This document shows positions 7,422-17,279 of a stretch of 64,000 nt of DNA, one piece after another (position 1 is the stretch's first letter; the number at the start of each line of letters is the position of its first letter). The DNA is from Blepharisma stoltei ATCC 30299 (taxonomy: Eukaryota > Protista > Ciliophora), in the NCBI GenBank assembly GCA_965603825.1, contig CBFDEM010000027.1:620001-684000 (forward strand), given 5' to 3'. Both the position numbers and the translations under genes were made by a program. Below the pieces are notes generated by a model that did not search any database, was not told where the DNA came from, and saw only the letters and a list, made by a program, of their open reading frames with translations.

Positions 7422-10400
7422 TTATCTACTTAATCTCTTCGATTTGTAGTTATCTTCTGCAGGACTGGAAGCTCTTTTCTGTTCTTTCCGCTTCAAATAG
7501 TCTAAAGTAGGATAGTCTGTGATAAGTTTTTCAATTAAGATTTCTAAGTTTTCATCACCAAGCTTTTTTCTTTCATTAATTATCTCATCTTCCGACCCGT
7601 CTCCACCACATAGCCTTAACTGGTTTAGAATTCGACATCCTTGAGTAAATCATGTGTTTATATTTATAGCTTGTTCCATGCTAAATGGCTCAAGTTCCTG
7701 AATCAATATGTTTCATTTTGGTAGATCAGATTGATAAAAGACAATCCCTCGAACAATTATACTTTTAAAATAATTATAATCTTGGCTGGTGTTATATAGT
7801 GAAATAGCAATATCCATATATTTTTTAACAAAAATTTGCCAGAGAGCATTTGTAGCATGAACTTGAGCATTCTCGATACTCAACCGATCGAATTTTTTAT
7901 ACTCATGTATAATTATAGTACTGCTCAAATTGGCCACAGGAAGAAAAATTGCATCCGCTTTGTTCCTGAAATTGTTAGGCCTTTCTGAGTATATTGTTCA
8001 TGCAGAGTTATCAATATTAATTGAAGCAAGCCTCGCTATTCCTCCCAGTAAAGTCTGAAAATCTGCTTCAGTTCTATCAGCGCTTTCTTCAAAATTTCAA
8101 AGCAACTCATTTTGAATTAGGTATTGAAGTTTTTCGCAATTCCCCAAGTTTTCAATAAATTCTTTTGCGATCTCATAAATATTGATTTTGTTCTCTCCAG
8201 TTTTTATATTAATTCACATTGTAAGCAAGTATTCGTAGAAGTCTCATTTTGCTTCTTTATTCGGGATAACATAAGTTTGCCGCATTTTGTCATCAATATC
8301 AGGTGTTATATATCCACAATGCAGCAGATAGGCCAAAAAGTTATTTTTTATCTCTCTAATGTCTCCAAAATGTATCTCTTCAGGAATTTTTGTATTCAAA
8401 GTGAGGTACCCAGTTTTCATTATCTCATATAATTCATTAAAATTTTCCAAATTACTAAATGTAGAAATCAATATACTGTAGCTGCCTGTATTTATTCAGT
8501 AAGGTTGAAGTGGAAAATCAGATTTCTCACTTATGGCCTGCAAACAACTCGTTATTGATCAAGGATTGTATATTCGTATCTTACCAACATTGTAGCCATT
8601 ATATCACGTCTTAATTATGTTACTTTGCTCTATAAAATCTTCTTCAGATTCATAGTCTAAAATTTTTCTAAACAATTCAGTTACTTCTACCTCAGTAAAT
8701 CCGAAGCAATCTGCATAGAGAGAATCATTTTGAATTGTGCATGCCTCTACATTGTTCATGCCTGATAAAAATGTATCCTGTGCGATCTTAAGAATCCCAA
8801 TGAAGATTACTTTATCAATAAACTCTGGCAGGTCTTTAAATAGCAGATACAGTAATCCTCTTAACTCAATAGCAGCATCTCTTTCCTCACTTATATTGAT
8901 GAAGTCATTAATTGGCCTATCATATTCATCCACTAGCACTAAAACAGGCTTATTATGAACACTATAAAGTATTTGTGCCAGATTGATTATAGCATCTTCA
9001 ATTTTAATTTGCGAACTATCATTTATGTATGTCCTGAATAGTCTAAGACTGAGACTTATTTTTATATTATGCTGATCAACGAATCATTCTAGCATTCGAG
9101 TACTCGTATTTGTATAATCAATATTATGATGTGGGTTTTTCAAACATCATTCTTTTACTTCATTTTCTAAATCTTGACGATATTCATATTCATGCTTGAG
9201 ATATGCATTTCAAATCGAGTCACGTATTCCTTGGATATTGGGGTTGCCATTTTTTCTATAGCCAAATATTCTACCAAAGCTCAGCAAAATTGTTGGCTTA
9301 CTTCCGAAATATTTTCTATATCGTCCATCGTCTAAAGTCATTATTTTCAAGCATCTGCTAAGATCTGAATTATTTAGATCTGTATTATCTTTTCCGCCAG
9401 TAAATGCATGCAAATTCGCGAAATTTCCATTTTCATCATATTTTGGGTGAAAAAAAGCTTTAAGCATTCGCATGTTGAACGTCTTTCCCCATCTTCTTGG
9501 CCTTGTAATAAGAATTAATTTATTGAGATTGTCTATAATTTTTTTGATAAAATGGGTTTTATCGACAAAAGCATCTTCACTTGTGGCATTTATAAAGTCT
9601 ACATTCCAGCAAGAAATAATAGAATTTTTTTTAACTTTTAAAGCAGACTGCTGAGTTTCAGGCGAGTTATCTGTAGCGCTTATAGGATGGCGTGGTGTCA
9701 CACAAATTGTTGGATCGTTTAAGTCAATGCTATAATTTTCTAAAATTGCTCTCACTTTACTACTTTGATCCATATCAAATCTATAAAATGAGCCCAAGAA
9801 CTTATAATTGCCTTTTGAAATAAGCATGACTGTATTAAATAAACACCAGAGACCGCTTTCGTAAGGATACATGCATTGTTTAGCGAAGGATGTATCAGTT
9901 ATTTTAGCATTTGGAAAGAACCCGCCCAAAGAAAATTGCCCTATATGCGAATCTTCAAAATTAATTTTTTCCTTTAATAGAGATTTTATATTTTCAGGAA
10001 TTCGAAAATCATTCCCTGACGAGTCTATTAGAAAAATTAATTCAGATGGGTTTTCTAGAGGACTTTTATCGATAAGTATGTGATTCTTCGGGAGAATTAC
10101 TATTGTTTGCCAAAAATAATTAAATTTGAGCTCTTCATCTGATAATTGATGCTTTTCTTCAACTGGTACTGCTTTTCAGCAAGATACAATTGGAATCCTC
10201 AATTCTGGGCCTGAGGCTTGCAATATTTCTTCGATTTTTACAATAAAATCCAGATTTCCTGAAGTTTCATCAGTTAAGGTGGGGGACCCGCACAAAGAAA
10301 ACTCTTGATCTATGAAATGGATTTTATTATTATATATCATCTGAAATGCGTTTTTGATTGTCTGAAATGATGCATAACCTTGATTAAGGCTAGTCTCCAA

Positions 10401-10454
10401 TCAATCGTCAAGCTGCAAAAAATCCCTATATAAGCACTTTTCTGCAGATGGCAT
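7422..10454 (-). CDS. Intact 1010-aa AAA-ATPase-like + PD-(D/E)XK nuclease protein with N-terminal degenerate Ulp1/CE-clan protease-like domain
   Basis: Five track ORFs share one frame; no TAA/TAG between ATG 10454 and TAA 7422; 14 in-frame TGA. Motifs FVDKT, TRPRRWGKT (Walker A), VLVDEYD (Walker B), FGFTEVEV, WYNGY, IYNPWSI, YWINTG, LLHCGYIT, IPNKE, KADAIF...IIHEYKK, QI..KKY. Confidence 0.88.
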
Positions 10455-10639
10455 ATTTTTTATTATATAACTAACAAATTTTAATAAAGAAATCATTATA
10501 AAGTTCATTACTCATTTGCAGACAAGCATTGTCTAGATTATTTGCTAGTGCCGATGCTTGATCTAATGACAAAAAAATGCTATTTGCAGTTGTTACTCCT
10601 CATTTAGTATTTCTAAAATTTATAATAGTAAAGGCTAAA

Positions 10640-11684
10640 TTAAATGATTATAGGGCGGATTGATGTTAAAAATGAGACATACCTATCATGAAGCTCTTCA
10701 GTACTATTTCCATCAAGAACTGTTACATCAGTTAATAAAGCAGAAACTACATATGGATCTGAGTTTGAGGCGGGTCTTCTATCTTCAAAGTAGCCTTTTC
10801 CATCATTTGCCGTGACTCTTGGTATCCTTATTGATGCCCCACGGTCTGCGACTCCAAAGCTAAAAGTATTAATATTTGATGTCTCGCATGCCCCTGACAA
10901 TCTTTTTGCATTATCTTTCCCATAACCATCTATACAGTACATATGTTTTTCCCTCAATTTCTCAATATAATTATAAATTGTCTGTATCCCTCCTTCACGT
11001 CTAGTTGAGTTTGTAGAAAAATTCGAATGGCAGCCAGACCCATTCCATTCCCCAATAACAGGCTTGCATTCCCAATTAACAGACGTTCCATAATGTTCAG
11101 CAACTCTTAATAAGAGGTATCGAGCCATCCAAACTTGGTCACCAAGGTGAATTCCAGTAACAGGCCCTATCTGGAATTCCCATTGTCCAGGAAAAACTTC
11201 GCTATTAGTCCCAGAAATTGAAATCCCTGTATATAAGCAGCATCTATAATGAGCCTCCATAATCTGTCTTCCAAATGCACAGCCACCTCCAACACTACAA
11301 TAATAAGGCCCTTGAGGAGCTGGGTAGCCCCCTTCTGGGAAGCCTAAAGGTCTATGTGGGTAAGTATCATTACGATAGAGTACATATTCTTGTTCAAACC
11401 CAAACCAAGGCTCTTCATGAGCTGCTTTATTCATAACTTTTAAGCACTCAGAGCGAAATTGGTGTTTGTAGGAGTTCCATCTGGTTTCCAAGTGTCGCAG
11501 AGGACTAAAATATTATTTCCGAGTCTGAAGGGGTCTGGGTAAAAAACTCGAGGCTTGAGAAGAATTTCATTATCATGACCACTGGCTTGAAATGTAGAAG
11601 AGCCATCATAGTTTCATTCTGGGATATCAGAAAGAGATTTTATCTTTGGGATATCAAGGGTGCGGCTTTTAGAGCGGATATCTA
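10640..11684 (-). pseudogene. Glutamine synthetase pseudogene (5'-truncated duplicate with frameshift)
   Basis: Near-identical to 15835-16880 but lacks the start and about the first 37 codons. One-nt deletion near 11456 (gcgaaattgg versus gcgaaaattgg). Confidence 0.85.
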
Positions 11685-11688
11685 TTAT

Positions 11689-14446
11689 CTATGTTCCACT
11701 TAATCTCTTCGATTTGTAGTTATCCTCAGCAGGATTGGAAGCTCTTTTCTGTTCTTTCCGCTTCAAATAGTCTAAAGTAGGATAGTCTGTGATAAGTTTT
11801 TCAATTAAGATTTCTAAATTTTCATCACCAAGCTTTTGTCTTTCCTTAATTATCATATCTTTCGATCCGTCTCCACCACATAACCTTAATTTGTTTATAA
11901 CTCGACATCCTTGAGTAAATCATGTGTTTATATTTATAGCTTGCTCCATGCTAAATGGCCCAATTTCCTGAATCAATATGCTTCATTTTTTTTGCAGATC
12001 AACTCGATAAAAGACAATCCCTCGAACAATTATGCTTTTAAAATACTGATGATCTCTGCTGTTTTTATATAATGAAATAGCAATATCCATATATTTTTTA
12101 ACAAAAATTTGCCAGAGAGCATTTGTAGCATGAACTTGAGCATTCTCGATACTCAACCGATCGAATTTTTTATACTCATGTATAATTATAGTACTGCTCA
12201 AATTGGCTACTGGAAGAAAAATTGCATCCGCTTTGTTCCTGGAATCGTTAGGCCTTTCTGAGTATACTGTCCATGCAGAGTTATCAATTTTAATTGAAGC
12301 AAGCATCGCGATACCTCCCACCAAAGTCTGAAAATCTGCTTCAGTTCTATAATCACTTTCTTTAAAATTGTCAAGCAACTCATCTTGAATTAGGTTTTGA
12401 AGTTTTTCGCAATTCCCCAAGTTTTCAATAAATTCTTTTGCCGTCCCATCAACATTGATTCTGTTCTCTCCAGTTTTTTCATTAATTCACTTTTGAAGCA
12501 AATATTCGTAGAAGTCTCTTTTTGTTTCTTTATTCGGGATAACATAAGTTTGCCGCTTTTTGTCATCAATATTAGGTGTTATATATCCACAATGCAGCAG
12601 ACAGCCAAAAAAGTTATTTTTTATCTCTTTCATGTCTCCGAAATGTATCTCGTCAGGAAGTTTTGGATTCAAAGTGAGGTACCCAGTTTTCATTATATTA
12701 TATAATTCATTAAAATTTTCCAAATTACTAAATGCAGACATCAATATATCGTAGATACCTGTATTTATTCAGTAAGGTCGAAGTGGAAAATCAGATTTCT
12801 CACTTACAGCCTGCAAGCAATTCGTTATTGATCAAGGATTGTATATTCGTATCTTGCCAACATTGTAGCCATTATATCACGTCTTAATTATGTTAATTTG
12901 CTCTTTAAAATCTCCTTCAGATTCATAATATAAATTTTTTCTAAGCAATTCAGTTACTTCTGCCTCTGTAAATCCGAAGCAATCTGCGTAGAGAAAATCA
13001 TTTTGAATTGTGTATGCCTTTAAATTTCTCATGCTTGATGAAAGTTTATTATGTGCGATTTTAAGAGTCCCAGTGAAGATTGATTTATCAATAAACTTTG
13101 GCAGGTCTTTACATAGCAGATTCAGAAATCATCCAAAATTAGCAGCAATATCTCTTTCACCATTTTTATTAATGAAGTCATTAATTGGCCTGTCATATTC
13201 ATCCACTAGCACTAAAACAGGCTTTTTATGAATATCATAAAGCATTCGTGCCAGATTGATTATAGCATTATCAATTTTAATTTGCGAGCTATCTTTTATG
13301 TATGTCCTGAATATTCTAAGACTGCGACTTATATATATATTATACCGATCAACGAATCATTCTAGCATTTCAATACTCTCATTTGTATAATCAATATTAT
13401 GATGTGGGTTTTTCAAACATCATGCTTTTACTACATTTTCTAAACCTTGACGATAATCATATTCATGCTCGCTATATGCATTTCAAATCGAATCACGCAT
13501 TCCTTGAAGATAAATGTCAATATTGGGGTTGCCGTTCATCCCATAATCATTTATCAACAAAAGTATCATCACTTATAGCATTTATAAAGTCTACATTCCC
13601 GCCAGAAATAGTAGATTTTTTTTTAACTTTTAAAGCAGACTGCCGAGTTTCGGGTGATATATCTGAAGCTTTCGTAGGACGGTGTGGTGTCACGCAAATT
13701 GTTGGATCATTTAAGTCAATGCTATATTTTTCTAAAATAGCTCTCAATTTACTACTTCGATCGATTTCAAATCTATAAAATGAGCCCAAGAACTTATGAT
13801 TGCCTTTTGAAATAAGCATGACCGTGTTAAATAAACACCAAAGACCGCTTTCGTAAGGATATGTGCATTGTTTAGCGAAGGATGTATCAGTTATTTTAGC
13901 ATTTGGAAAGCACCCAGCAAAAGAGCTTTGCCATCCATCCGGATCTTCAAGATTAAATTTTCCAGTTAATAGAGATTTTATATTTTCAGGAATTCGAAAG
14001 TTATTCCCTGATGAGTCTATGAAAAAAATTAATTCGGATGTGTTTTTCAGAGGACTACCATCGATAAGTGTGTGATTCTTAGGGAGAATTACTATTGTTT
14101 GCCAAAAATAATTAAATTTAAGCTCTTCATCTGATAATTGGCGGTTTCCTTCAACTGGCAGTGCTTTTCAGCAAGATACAATTGGAATCCTTAATTCTCG
14201 GTCTGAGTCTTGCATTATTTCTTCGATTTTTTCAATAAAATCCTGATTTTCTGAAGTTTCATCAGTTTCGGCGGGAGACCCGTACAAAGAAAACTCTTGA
14301 TCTATGAAGTGGATTTTATTACTATAAAGAGTCTGAAATGCGTTTTTAATTGTCTGAAATGATGAAAAACCTTGATTAAGGCTAGTCTGCGTTCATTCAT
14401 CAAGCCTTGAAAAATTCTCATACAAGTACAGTTCAAAAGATGTCAT
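11689..14446 (-). pseudogene. Second copy of the AAA-ATPase/PD-(D/E)XK gene, disrupted
   Basis: Colinear with 7422-10454, but about 293 nt (copy-1 9261-9557, including Walker A) is missing at about 13548, which shifts the frame. Confidence 0.85.
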
Positions 14447-15834: not shown

Positions 15835-16992
15835 TTAAATGATTATAGGACGTATTGATGTTAAAAATGAGACATACCTATCATGAAGCTCTTCAGTACT
15901 ATTTCCATCAAGAACTGTTACATCAGTTAATAAAGCAGAAACTACATATGGATCTGAGTTTGAGGCGGGTCTTCTATCTTCAAAGTAGCCTTTTCCATCA
16001 TTTGCCGTAACTCTTGGTATCCTTATTGATGCCCCACGGTCTGCGACTCCAAAGCTAAAAGTATTAATATTTGATGTCTCGCATGTCCCTGACAATCTTT
16101 TTGCATTATCTTTCCCATAACCATCTATACAGTACATATGTTTTTCTCTCAATTTCTCAATATAATTATAAATAGTCTGTATCCCTCCTTCACGTCTAGT
16201 TGAGTTTGTAGAAAAATTCGCATGGCAGCCAGACCCATTCCATTCCCCAATAACAGGCTTGCATTCCCAATTAACAGAAGTTCCATAATGTTCAGCAACT
16301 CTTAATAAGAGGTATCGAGCCATCCACACTTGGTCGCCAAGGTGAATTCCAGTAACAGGCCCTATCTGGAATTCCCATTGTCCAGGAAAAACTTCGCTAT
16401 TAGTCCCAGAAATTGAAATCCCTGTATATAAGCAGCATCTATAATGAGCCTCCATAATCTGTCTTCCAAATGCACAGCCACCTCCAACACTACAATAATA
16501 AGGCCCTTGAGGAGCTGGGTAGCCCCCTTCTGGGAAGCCTAAAGGTCTATGTGGGTAAGTATCATTACGATAGAGTACATATTCTTGTTCAAACCCAAAC
16601 CAAGGCTCTTCATGGGCTGCTTTATTCATAACTTTTAAGCACTCAGAGCGAAAATTGGTGTTTGTAGGAGTTCCATCTGGTTTCCAAGTGTCGCAGAGGA
16701 CTAAAATATTATTTCCGAGTCTGAAGGGGTCTGGGTAAAAAACTCGAGGCTTGAGAAGAATTTCACTATCATGACCACTGGCTTGAAATGTAGAAGAGCC
16801 ATCATAGTTTCATTCTGGGATATCAGAAAGAGATTTTATCTTTGGGATATCAAGGGTGCGGCTTTTAGAACGGATGTCTAGGCCTCTGCCACCGATTCAG
16901 ACGTATTCAGCTATTATTTTGTTATTTTGGGGAAGTTTGTTGAACTGGTAGTCTCCTCGGCCAACGCTTGATACCTTATCAGTAACCTTCAT
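15835..16992 (-). CDS. GLUL: Glutamine synthetase type II (385 aa)
   Basis: AEYVW(TGA)IGG, PEW(TGA)NYDGSST, PWFGFEQEY, PGQWEFQIGP, WNGSGCH, RGASIRIPR, GYFEDRRPASN. Confidence 0.96.
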
Positions 16993-17279
16993 ATTTGTAA
17001 AAAATTATTTAATGATCTCAGAAATATGGAAAAAATCTGTTTAAATAAAGAAAATTCTAATCAACTTTTTAAAGTTAATTTCATAGATTTGCACTTATAA
17101 ATTTGATTTCTTAGATCTAAAATGCATATTTTTCATTCTAAAAAGTGCTACTCTCAATTTATGAATATATAATTCTCTTATATACTAAGTATATTGCATT
17201 TGGATCCAAATATCTCTAGCAGAATAGCATCTTATGATTTTTTAACTTAATTTTTAAAAAACATCACAAAAATATAATA

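Follow-up and report, generated by a model that had tools for sequence, protein, structure and literature searches.

DUF1703-type ATPase-nucleases with a CE-clan pseudo-protease domain form an expanded family in the ciliate Blepharisma stoltei

A stretch of 64,000 nucleotides of the Blepharisma stoltei ATCC 30299 genome (the window, G000:C27:620001-684000, in an assembly of 41.46 Mb and 64 contigs) was analysed for a gene at positions 7422-10454 of the reverse strand. The predicted protein combines an N-terminal domain of the CE clan of Ulp1- and deubiquitinase (DUB)-like proteases that lacks the catalytic His and Cys, an AAA+ ATPase module of the DUF1703 type and a PD-(D/E)XK nuclease. By its sequence the gene is apparently a functional member of a lineage-specifically expanded family, publicly annotated only as 'AAA-ATPase-like domain-containing protein'. 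An initial annotation of the window had proposed the architecture of a dead CE-clan protease, an AAA-ATPase_like and a PD-(D/E)XK domain, and it gained support from the family alignment, from the Pfam family PF09820 and from structure models. For the function we favour, at about even chances, an ATP-controlled nuclease of a conflict or defence type in which the dead protease would be a non-catalytic binding or regulatory module. The features are listed below; residue numbers refer to the open reading frame (ORF) of the window unless P0153, the public gene model, is named.

7422-10454, reverse strand: complete ORF of 1010 codons with TGA read as Trp, terminal TAA at 7422-7424
9687-10436, reverse strand: predicted CE-clan (Ulp1/DUB-like) pseudo-protease domain, residues ~7-256, from the AlphaFold model and profile matches
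10113-10115, reverse strand: Phe114, codon TTT, at the position of the catalytic His, followed by the invariant Trp115
10023-10025, reverse strand: Asp144, position of the catalytic-triad Asp retained
9876-9878, reverse strand: Gln193, position of the oxyanion-hole Gln retained, variable among paralogues
9855-9857, reverse strand: Ser200, codon AGC, at the position of the catalytic Cys
8070-9629, reverse strand: DUF1703-type AAA+ ATPase module (PF09820) with helical domains, residues ~276-795, from Pfam, VIA-align and Foldseek
9480-9503, reverse strand: Walker A R-P-R-R-W-G-K-T, residues 318-325
8919-8939, reverse strand: Walker B region with D-E-Y-D, residues 509-512 (D509, E510)
7695-8069, reverse strand: predicted PD-(D/E)XK nuclease domain (PDDEXK_9-like), residues ~796-920, from the alignment with PF08011-positive homologues
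7425-7694, reverse strand: C-terminal helical extension, residues 921-1010, with a Lys/Arg-rich tail at its end
11689-14446, reverse strand: second, broken tandem copy with 89% nucleotide identity

A host-encoded gene with an ATPase-nuclease core

The ORF contains 14 in-frame TGA codons and no internal TAA or TAG; with the composition of the window stretch, the chance of 1010 codons free of TAA and TAG is about e^-64. Tryptophan is encoded by five TGG and the 14 TGA codons. Two of the latter encode W617 (in W-Y-N-G-Y) and W632 (in N-P-W-S), positions at which Trp is conserved in the bacterial homologues, thus the reading of TGA as Trp is shown directly for this gene. Fifteen of 15 database proteins checked, 13 of them publicly named as B. 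stoltei, were exact substrings of the TGA = Trp translations of loci in this genome. The public gene model P0153 (1024 aa) consists of the window ORF and 14 residues from an upstream ATG (10455-10496). The gene is therefore intronless in the public model too, and the single intronless ORF of 1010 amino acids that had been read initially with TGA as Trp was borne out by translation and by P0153. As start codon, the paralogue alignment favours the downstream ATG at 10454 over the P0153 start 14 codons upstream.

The bacterial type of the ATPase-nuclease, and Tisiphia and Rickettsia proteins as best named non-ciliate matches, might point to an artefact, be it bacterial contamination, a chimera in the contig or a pseudogene that is dead. 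Such an artefact is hardly credible and is already contradicted by code use, composition, neighbours, paralogues and the ratio of nonsynonymous to synonymous substitutions (dN/dS). In Rickettsiales, each of the 14 in-frame TGA codons would terminate translation; the ciliate reads them as Trp, also at the conserved Trp sites. The content of guanine and cytosine equals that of the flanks, the contig is about 1 Mb long, the neighbours are eukaryotic genes with the same genetic code, paralogues are spread over nine contigs, and dN/dS is below 1. The same architecture was also present on environmental contigs, next to eukaryotic genes (kinesin, Myb, EXS/SPX and uS5). The gene is host-encoded and not a contaminant, because it uses 14 TGA codons for Trp, has the composition of the host and lies inside the ~1-Mb contig.

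PF09820 (AAA-ATPase_like) matched P0153 with 78.5 bits (cut-off 26.1) and TGA-free pieces of the sequence with 47.4 and 42.6 bits; it was the sole Pfam match on both. For DUF1703, Knizewski et al. (PMC1913061) defined family-specific forms of Walker A, R-P-R-R-x-G-K-S/T, and Walker B, D-E-Y-D, and both motifs of the window protein fit them exactly. The score to PF09820 and the presence of all published motifs identify the predicted core of the protein as DUF1703. An AlphaFold model of P0153, built from an 84-row family alignment, reached a mean predicted local distance difference test value (pLDDT) of 88.2 and a predicted template modelling score (pTM) of 0.72. Residues 290-820 of this model (P0153 numbering) were compared with known structures by VIA-align: the matches included PABY2304 (Z 16.4, 315 aligned), SSO1545 (Z 15.6) and the plant nucleotide-binding leucine-rich repeat (NLR) protein RPP1 (Z 14.9), further CED-4, Avs5 and ORC/Cdc6, together with TnsC-like neighbours. 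NB-ARC proteins, CED-4 and Avs5 gave Z values of 12-15, while the archaeal ATPases PABY2304 and SSO1545 and ORC scored equal or higher. The top match in Foldseek was BrxC, the ATPase of BREX.

The nuclease motifs are complete with E824 (I), D834 (II), E851-x-K853 (III) and Q873 (IV). As residues 318-325 and 509-512 are also present, the initial statement of intact Walker A/B and nuclease residues stands. In the alignment, the C-terminal region corresponds to the part of Tisiphia and other bacterial homologues that is matched by PF08011, the P0153 model has the secondary-structure pattern of the nuclease, and the nuclease-like domains ND1-ND2 of CidB matched the model with Z 11.4. The fold evidence is weaker than for the other two modules, because the nuclease domain was folded only within the whole protein. 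The C-terminal helical extension is confined to the eukaryote-clade rows of the alignment; its Lys/Arg-rich tail may be a nuclear localisation signal.

The N-terminal CE-clan domain

A CE-clan fold of the N-terminus was found in AlphaFold models with Foldseek and VIA-align. The CE part of the P0153 model had a pLDDT of about 90 and matched African swine fever virus (ASFV) pS273R (Z 13.7), OtDUB (13.0), ChlaDUB (12.4), SnCE1 (12.1) and Ulp1 (10.4) in VIA-align. The N-domain of a TGA-free paralogue (L015:2319-3188) was modelled with a pLDDT of 62 and a pTM of 0.66, and its Foldseek matches belonged nearly all to the CE clan. In an unbiased VIA-align search with this model, independent of Foldseek, ranks 1-30 of 48,161 representative PDB chains were all CE-clan proteins. 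OtDUB (Z 12.0) and RickCE (10.8) were in the lead, and Lpg1148 (10.0), the DUB domain of CidB (9.4), ASFV pS273R, ChlaDUB, SseL, the NEDD8 protease, adenain, poxvirus I7L, SENPs, Ulp1 and the YopJ family were among the same 30 ranks. Beyond rank 30 the scores fell to ~5, on an unrelated helical tail.

Independently of the models, the sequence profile of the Blepharisma N-domain matched 137 representatives among 1.84 billion proteins. In the aligned columns most of these have the motifs G-x-H-W, F-x-D-S and Q-Q-x-G-x-D-C with the canonical His, Asp, Gln and Cys. The CE-clan spacing noticed in the initial annotation was confirmed column for column by the alignment with these relatives. In the PDB, a profile of the CE subfamily found RickCE (E = 1.3e-4) and the DUB domain of CidB (1.6e-3); of 49 subfamily members, 18 matched PF02902 at E < 0.1, with a best value of 1.1e-4. 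A direct comparison by hhalign of the Blepharisma N-domain profile with the canonical C48 proteases of the same organism gave no significant match (probability 1.2%); the alignment, though short, fell in the His-Trp / Asp-Ser region.

Since the His position is occupied by Phe and the Cys position by Ser, the domain cannot use Cys/His protease chemistry and is a CE-clan homologue of the pseudo-protease kind rather than a peptidase. Both replacements had been reported initially for the two local copies, and the second copy (13472-14446) has indeed Phe and Ser as well. Catalytic His and Cys were absent in every Blepharisma copy aligned: the His column contains Phe, Leu, Ile, Ala or Ser, the Cys column Ser or Gly. 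Trp115 is present in every alignment row that covers its column. In SENP and Ulp1 structures, the Gly-Gly tail of the substrate is clamped with the help of the Trp that follows the catalytic His. The conservation of Trp115 is consistent with a retained ligand groove. A complex prediction of the CE domain with the Blepharisma ubiquitin unit gave a score of 0.00 without controls run, and was counted neither for nor against binding.

The N-terminal domain might still be an enzyme, with Ser200 as nucleophile or with an acetyltransferase-type activity as in YopJ and ChlaDUB of the CE clan. In most copies Cys is replaced by Ser and not by a random residue, Asp144 is kept, and CE-clan acetyltransferases (AvrA, PopP2, HopZ1a, ChlaDUB1) were among the structural matches. 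Nevertheless we regard such an activity as very unlikely: every Blepharisma copy has replaced the general-base His, two paralogues have Gly at the Cys position together with Asn at the Asp position, and no alternative conserved His was present in the paralogue alignment, the His of P-K-N-H being Tyr in several paralogues. A protease with a Ser nucleophile was judged unlikely for the loss of His in all Blepharisma copies.

Paralogues, relatives and origin

A genome-wide count yielded at least 11 intact full-length paralogues of 1013-1110 aa, often in tandem, on contigs C54, C22, C62, C40, C32, C58 and C27, besides many truncated or frameshifted copies. GK[ST] of Walker A, the first Asp of Walker B and the nuclease E-x-K are retained in all intact paralogues, with Glu or Asp as the second Walker B residue except for Gly in P0156. 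In most paralogues (L014, L015, L021, L016, L018, L019, L013) a helical insert of about 90 residues separates the CE domain from the ATPase; it is missing from the window copy, its local twin and the copy on C14. Selection on the family was estimated as dN/dS (Nei-Gojobori, ciliate code). For the CE domain, window copy and C14 copy gave 0.38 (95% bootstrap interval 0.26-0.59) and four other pairs 0.51-0.68; the interval was below 1 in four of the five pairs. Whole genes had a dN/dS of ~0.5, and values below 1 were obtained for all three domains of intact pairs. By these values the dead CE domain is under purifying selection and not drifting, and the whole-gene value indicates a moderate constraint.

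The second tandem copy has suffered a net deletion of ~281 nt near 13520-13549, by which codons ~300-403 including Walker A were lost and the frame was shifted. Its remnants are a 324-aa ORF with the CE domain only (13472-14446, reverse strand, P0145) and a remainder of 627 codons. The dN/dS of its ATPase part was ~1.15 in comparison with the window copy. Because of the deletion and this ratio, the second copy is either decaying or reduced to the CE-only ORF. P0145 is essentially a stand-alone dead CE domain and has its own entry in the protein collection. A glutamine synthetase gene (Gln-synt_C, E ~5e-15) follows each ATPase-nuclease copy, at 10640-11512 (290 codons) and 15835-17004 (389 codons), both on the reverse strand; thus the duplicated unit was a two-gene block. 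Two further loci of the genome lie outside the expanded family: a more canonical ORF with PF09820 only (461 aa, E 5.5e-34, no CE domain; L045:3508-4893, G000:C22:336508-337893) and a short canonical PDDEXK_9 fragment (E 3.9e-16; L031:2280-2546, G000:C56:427280-427546).

Such an inventory could also reflect a selfish or addictive element, a nuclease gene of bacterial derivation that was multiplied by tandem duplication, brings the host no benefit and is now mostly decaying. Tandem clusters with many truncated or frameshifted copies, the second copy without the Walker A region and with a dN/dS of ~1.15 in its ATPase part, and bacterial homologues beside insertion sequence (IS) elements and on conjugative elements are in line with this explanation. 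Against it, 11 copies have kept ORFs of 1000 codons with conserved catalytic motifs, dN/dS is below 1 in every domain of the intact pairs, and the flanks are ordinary host genes like the glutamine synthetase genes; transposases or terminal repeats were not seen, though none were searched for. On balance, a selfish nature of the family seems unlikely.

The same CE-ATPase-nuclease architecture was found in environmental sequences. These are eukaryotic, with the taxonomic origin of most rows assigned from few genomic contexts. Members that retain the protease residues were absent in Blepharisma and present among these relatives: P0023 and P0037 have kept His, Asp, Gln and Cys; P0010 and P0012 have kept His, with Ser in the Cys column. 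An environmental contig of a Blepharisma relative encodes two family members side by side (1030 and 1008 aa, L032:4499-11027); the second is P0023, with an intact protease triad and Gly at the nuclease Asp column. On the 44-kb contig of P0023, the ribosomal protein uS5 is among named proteins closest to that of B. stoltei (74% identity). P0141 has kinesin, Myb, MORN and PX genes as neighbours, and P0160 adjoins EXS/SPX genes.

In a tree of the ATPase-nuclease part (IQ-TREE, 52 rows, LG+C20 with posterior mean site frequencies, PMSF), 22 eukaryotic or presumed eukaryotic rows were on one side of a branch with a support of 89 in the SH-like approximate likelihood ratio test (SH-aLRT). The Blepharisma rows formed one clade (98), and a FastTree calculation on 122 rows agreed; both are unrooted quick-search trees. 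Some relatives in the eukaryote-side clade have N-terminal regions unmatched by the CE profile. The nearest outgroups included proteins in bacterial contexts, namely next to gyrase and Mur ligase, next to DnaA and DnaN, or on an IS-rich contig, which upholds the bacterial affinity of the ATPase-nuclease assumed in the initial annotation. The best named non-ciliate matches, determined with a close paralogue, were Tisiphia and Rickettsia proteins with E ~1e-55 and 29-31% identity over ~600 residues. Both trees placed these proteins elsewhere than the ciliate clade. The acquisition from an endosymbiont, as first suggested, was thus not sustained: the ciliate proteins form their own deep clade with environmental eukaryotes. 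A recent origin from a Tisiphia-like or Rickettsia-like endosymbiont was rejected, as the gene was not nested among the proteins of these bacteria. A transfer from bacteria to eukaryotes is inferred because DUF1703 proteins are spread mainly among bacteria (PMC1913061), and an old transfer followed by expansion would fit the trees.

In a tree of the CE domains, all domains of the fusion family fell into one 18-row set (support 100) with P0007, P0008, P0011 and P0009, the dead domains being on long branches. P0009 (L037:8001-15251) is a bacterial protein of 2416 aa in which a close, catalytically intact relative of the window CE domain is joined to a NACHT domain, a second RickCE-like domain and a DnaJ region. 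Its locus is a bacterial conjugative element with TrwC, TraG and HicAB. Other intact members of the CE subfamily (P0018, P0027, P0031, P0014, P0034, P0015) are fused to an OTT_1508-like deaminase, to AAA_21 (ABC-type) ATPases or to ankyrin repeats, a repertoire typical of effectors and polymorphic toxins. In P0255 (1304 aa), a RickCE-like catalytic domain is attached to the C-terminal side of a DUF1703 ATPase. This order, opposite to that of the ciliate proteins, suggests an independent CE-DUF1703 fusion.

Possible function and comparison with known systems

As an ATP-controlled nuclease of conflict or defence type, the protein would use the ATPase to govern assembly or the engagement of DNA, and the PD-(D/E)XK nuclease would be the effector. 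The dead CE domain might hold a peptide ligand, such as the C-terminal tail of a ubiquitin-like protein; alternatively, it might autoinhibit the enzyme. Binding or autoinhibition is our best guess for its role, though no more than a guess. A conflict or defence type was proposed because the family has expanded with rapid turnover and has clade relatives with N-termini unmatched by the CE profile; because the CE subfamily is repeatedly paired with nucleoside triphosphatases (NTPases; NACHT, AAA_21, DUF1703) and toxin domains (OTT_1508 deaminase); and because the ATPase is structurally like ORC, BrxC and the signal transduction ATPases with numerous domains (STAND), and DUF1703 has undergone multi-copy expansions in intracellular symbionts (PMC6387759).

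Several results weigh against this reading. The models Peptidase_C48 (PF02902) and RickCE (PF22179) had no match on the TGA-free pieces, on P0153 or at the window locus in a six-frame genome scan. PDDEXK_9 (PF08011) had none at E <= 1 on the pieces, at E <= 0.1 on P0153 or at the window locus in the six-frame scan. Because the Peptidase_C48 and PDDEXK_9 models do not match the window protein, the CE and the nuclease assignments rest on family alignment and structure. The labels PDDEXK_9 and Ulp1 of the initial annotation were accordingly upheld by these two lines of evidence and missed by the Pfam models. A repeat-type sensor domain (leucine-rich repeats, LRR; tetratricopeptide repeats, TPR; WD40) was not detected in the Pfam search of P0153 and the paralogues. 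A dN/dS of ~0.5 equally fits a merely relaxed constraint, and a family that is selfish or decaying would likewise show tandem arrays in which many copies are dead.

The family could instead serve the DNA metabolism of the ciliate itself, in programmed DNA elimination, in macronuclear fragmentation and amplification or in repair, with the dead protease docking onto ubiquitylated or SUMOylated chromatin. The intact nuclease and ATPase motifs, the basic tail as possible nuclear localisation signal, the ORC/Cdc6-like and TnsC-like structural neighbours and the extensive developmental genome editing in Blepharisma (PMC9942806) would agree with such a task. Core DNA-processing genes, however, have rarely 11 or more fast-diverging paralogues with many pseudogenes, and the family is not named among the candidate excisases in the genome paper (PMC9942806). 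A role in the DNA processing of the ciliate seems unlikely.

An innate-immunity receptor of the ciliate, assembled from parts of bacterial origin, was considered as well and seems a doubtful proposition. The dead DUB-like domain would act as bait or sensor by binding a ubiquitin-like tail or by mimicking the target of effectors from intracellular bacteria. Binding of the ligand would release the ATP-driven assembly of the DUF1703 ATPase, by which the PD-(D/E)XK nuclease would be switched on. If true, this receptor would be a protist counterpart of the NLR and Avs systems with a pseudo-enzyme as sensor.

Irrespective of the function, DUF1703 ATPase-nucleases are now seen to be established and expanded in a ciliate nucleus too, besides their wide distribution in bacteria and their striking expansion in intracellular symbionts. 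Their DUB-type fusion partner looks active in uncultured relatives and is dead yet conserved in Blepharisma, and the same CE protease subfamily has been joined repeatedly to other NTPases and toxin domains. The culturable B. stoltei offers a concrete system for asking for the role of this class of NTPase-nucleases, for the reuse of pseudo-proteases, and for the movement of conflict modules between intracellular bacteria and protist hosts.

Among known systems, the DUF1703 proteins of bacteria and archaea, with expanded sets in Cardinium cCpun, Torix Rickettsia/Tisiphia and Simkania, share the ATPase-helical-nuclease core with the window protein, including the unusual Walker A and B forms and the nuclease residues E, D, E-x-K and Q. 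The window protein differs in being encoded in a eukaryotic nucleus with TGA as Trp, in its position in a separate clade with other eukaryotic sequences, and in the additional N-terminal CE-clan domain and C-terminal helical extension with basic tail; its nuclease has diverged so far that the Pfam model no longer matches it. CE-clan DUBs and proteases of ubiquitin-like proteins (OtDUB, RickCE, ChlaDUB, SnCE1, the CidB DUB domain, Ulp1/SENP) have the fold and the motif order His-Asp-Gln-Cys in common with the window domain. Asp and the Trp after the His position are conserved in both, whereas the window domain has Phe for His and Ser for Cys.

CidB of Wolbachia also joins restriction-endonuclease-fold and CE-clan domains in one protein, and the comparison with CidB in the initial annotation was fair at the level of the folds, as the structural matches to its DUB and ND1-ND2 domains demonstrate. 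The domain order is reversed and CidB lacks an AAA+ ATPase. In CidB the nuclease-like domains are inactive and the DUB is active; the window protein, with a dead protease and intact nuclease motifs, represents the opposite. For the different order, the presence of the ATPase and the opposite activity states, it is not a CidB-type factor. STAND and NLR-type NTPases (Avs, plant and animal NLRs, CED-4/Apaf-1) and BrxC resemble the window protein in the ATPase fold and in the layout of accessory domain, NTPase and effector. In contrast to the STAND and NLR proteins, it has no LRR, TPR or WD40 array, and its ATPase belongs by sequence to DUF1703/PF09820 and not to NACHT or NB-ARC. The DUF1703 members described in PMC1913061 and PMC6387759 were prokaryotic only, without biochemical characterisation or known function, and AAA-ATPase, nuclease and Ulp1 are not mentioned in the B. 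stoltei genome paper (PMC9942806). We rate the family of the window gene as a new eukaryotic architecture and as an expansion of an uncharacterised bacterial NTPase-nuclease family.

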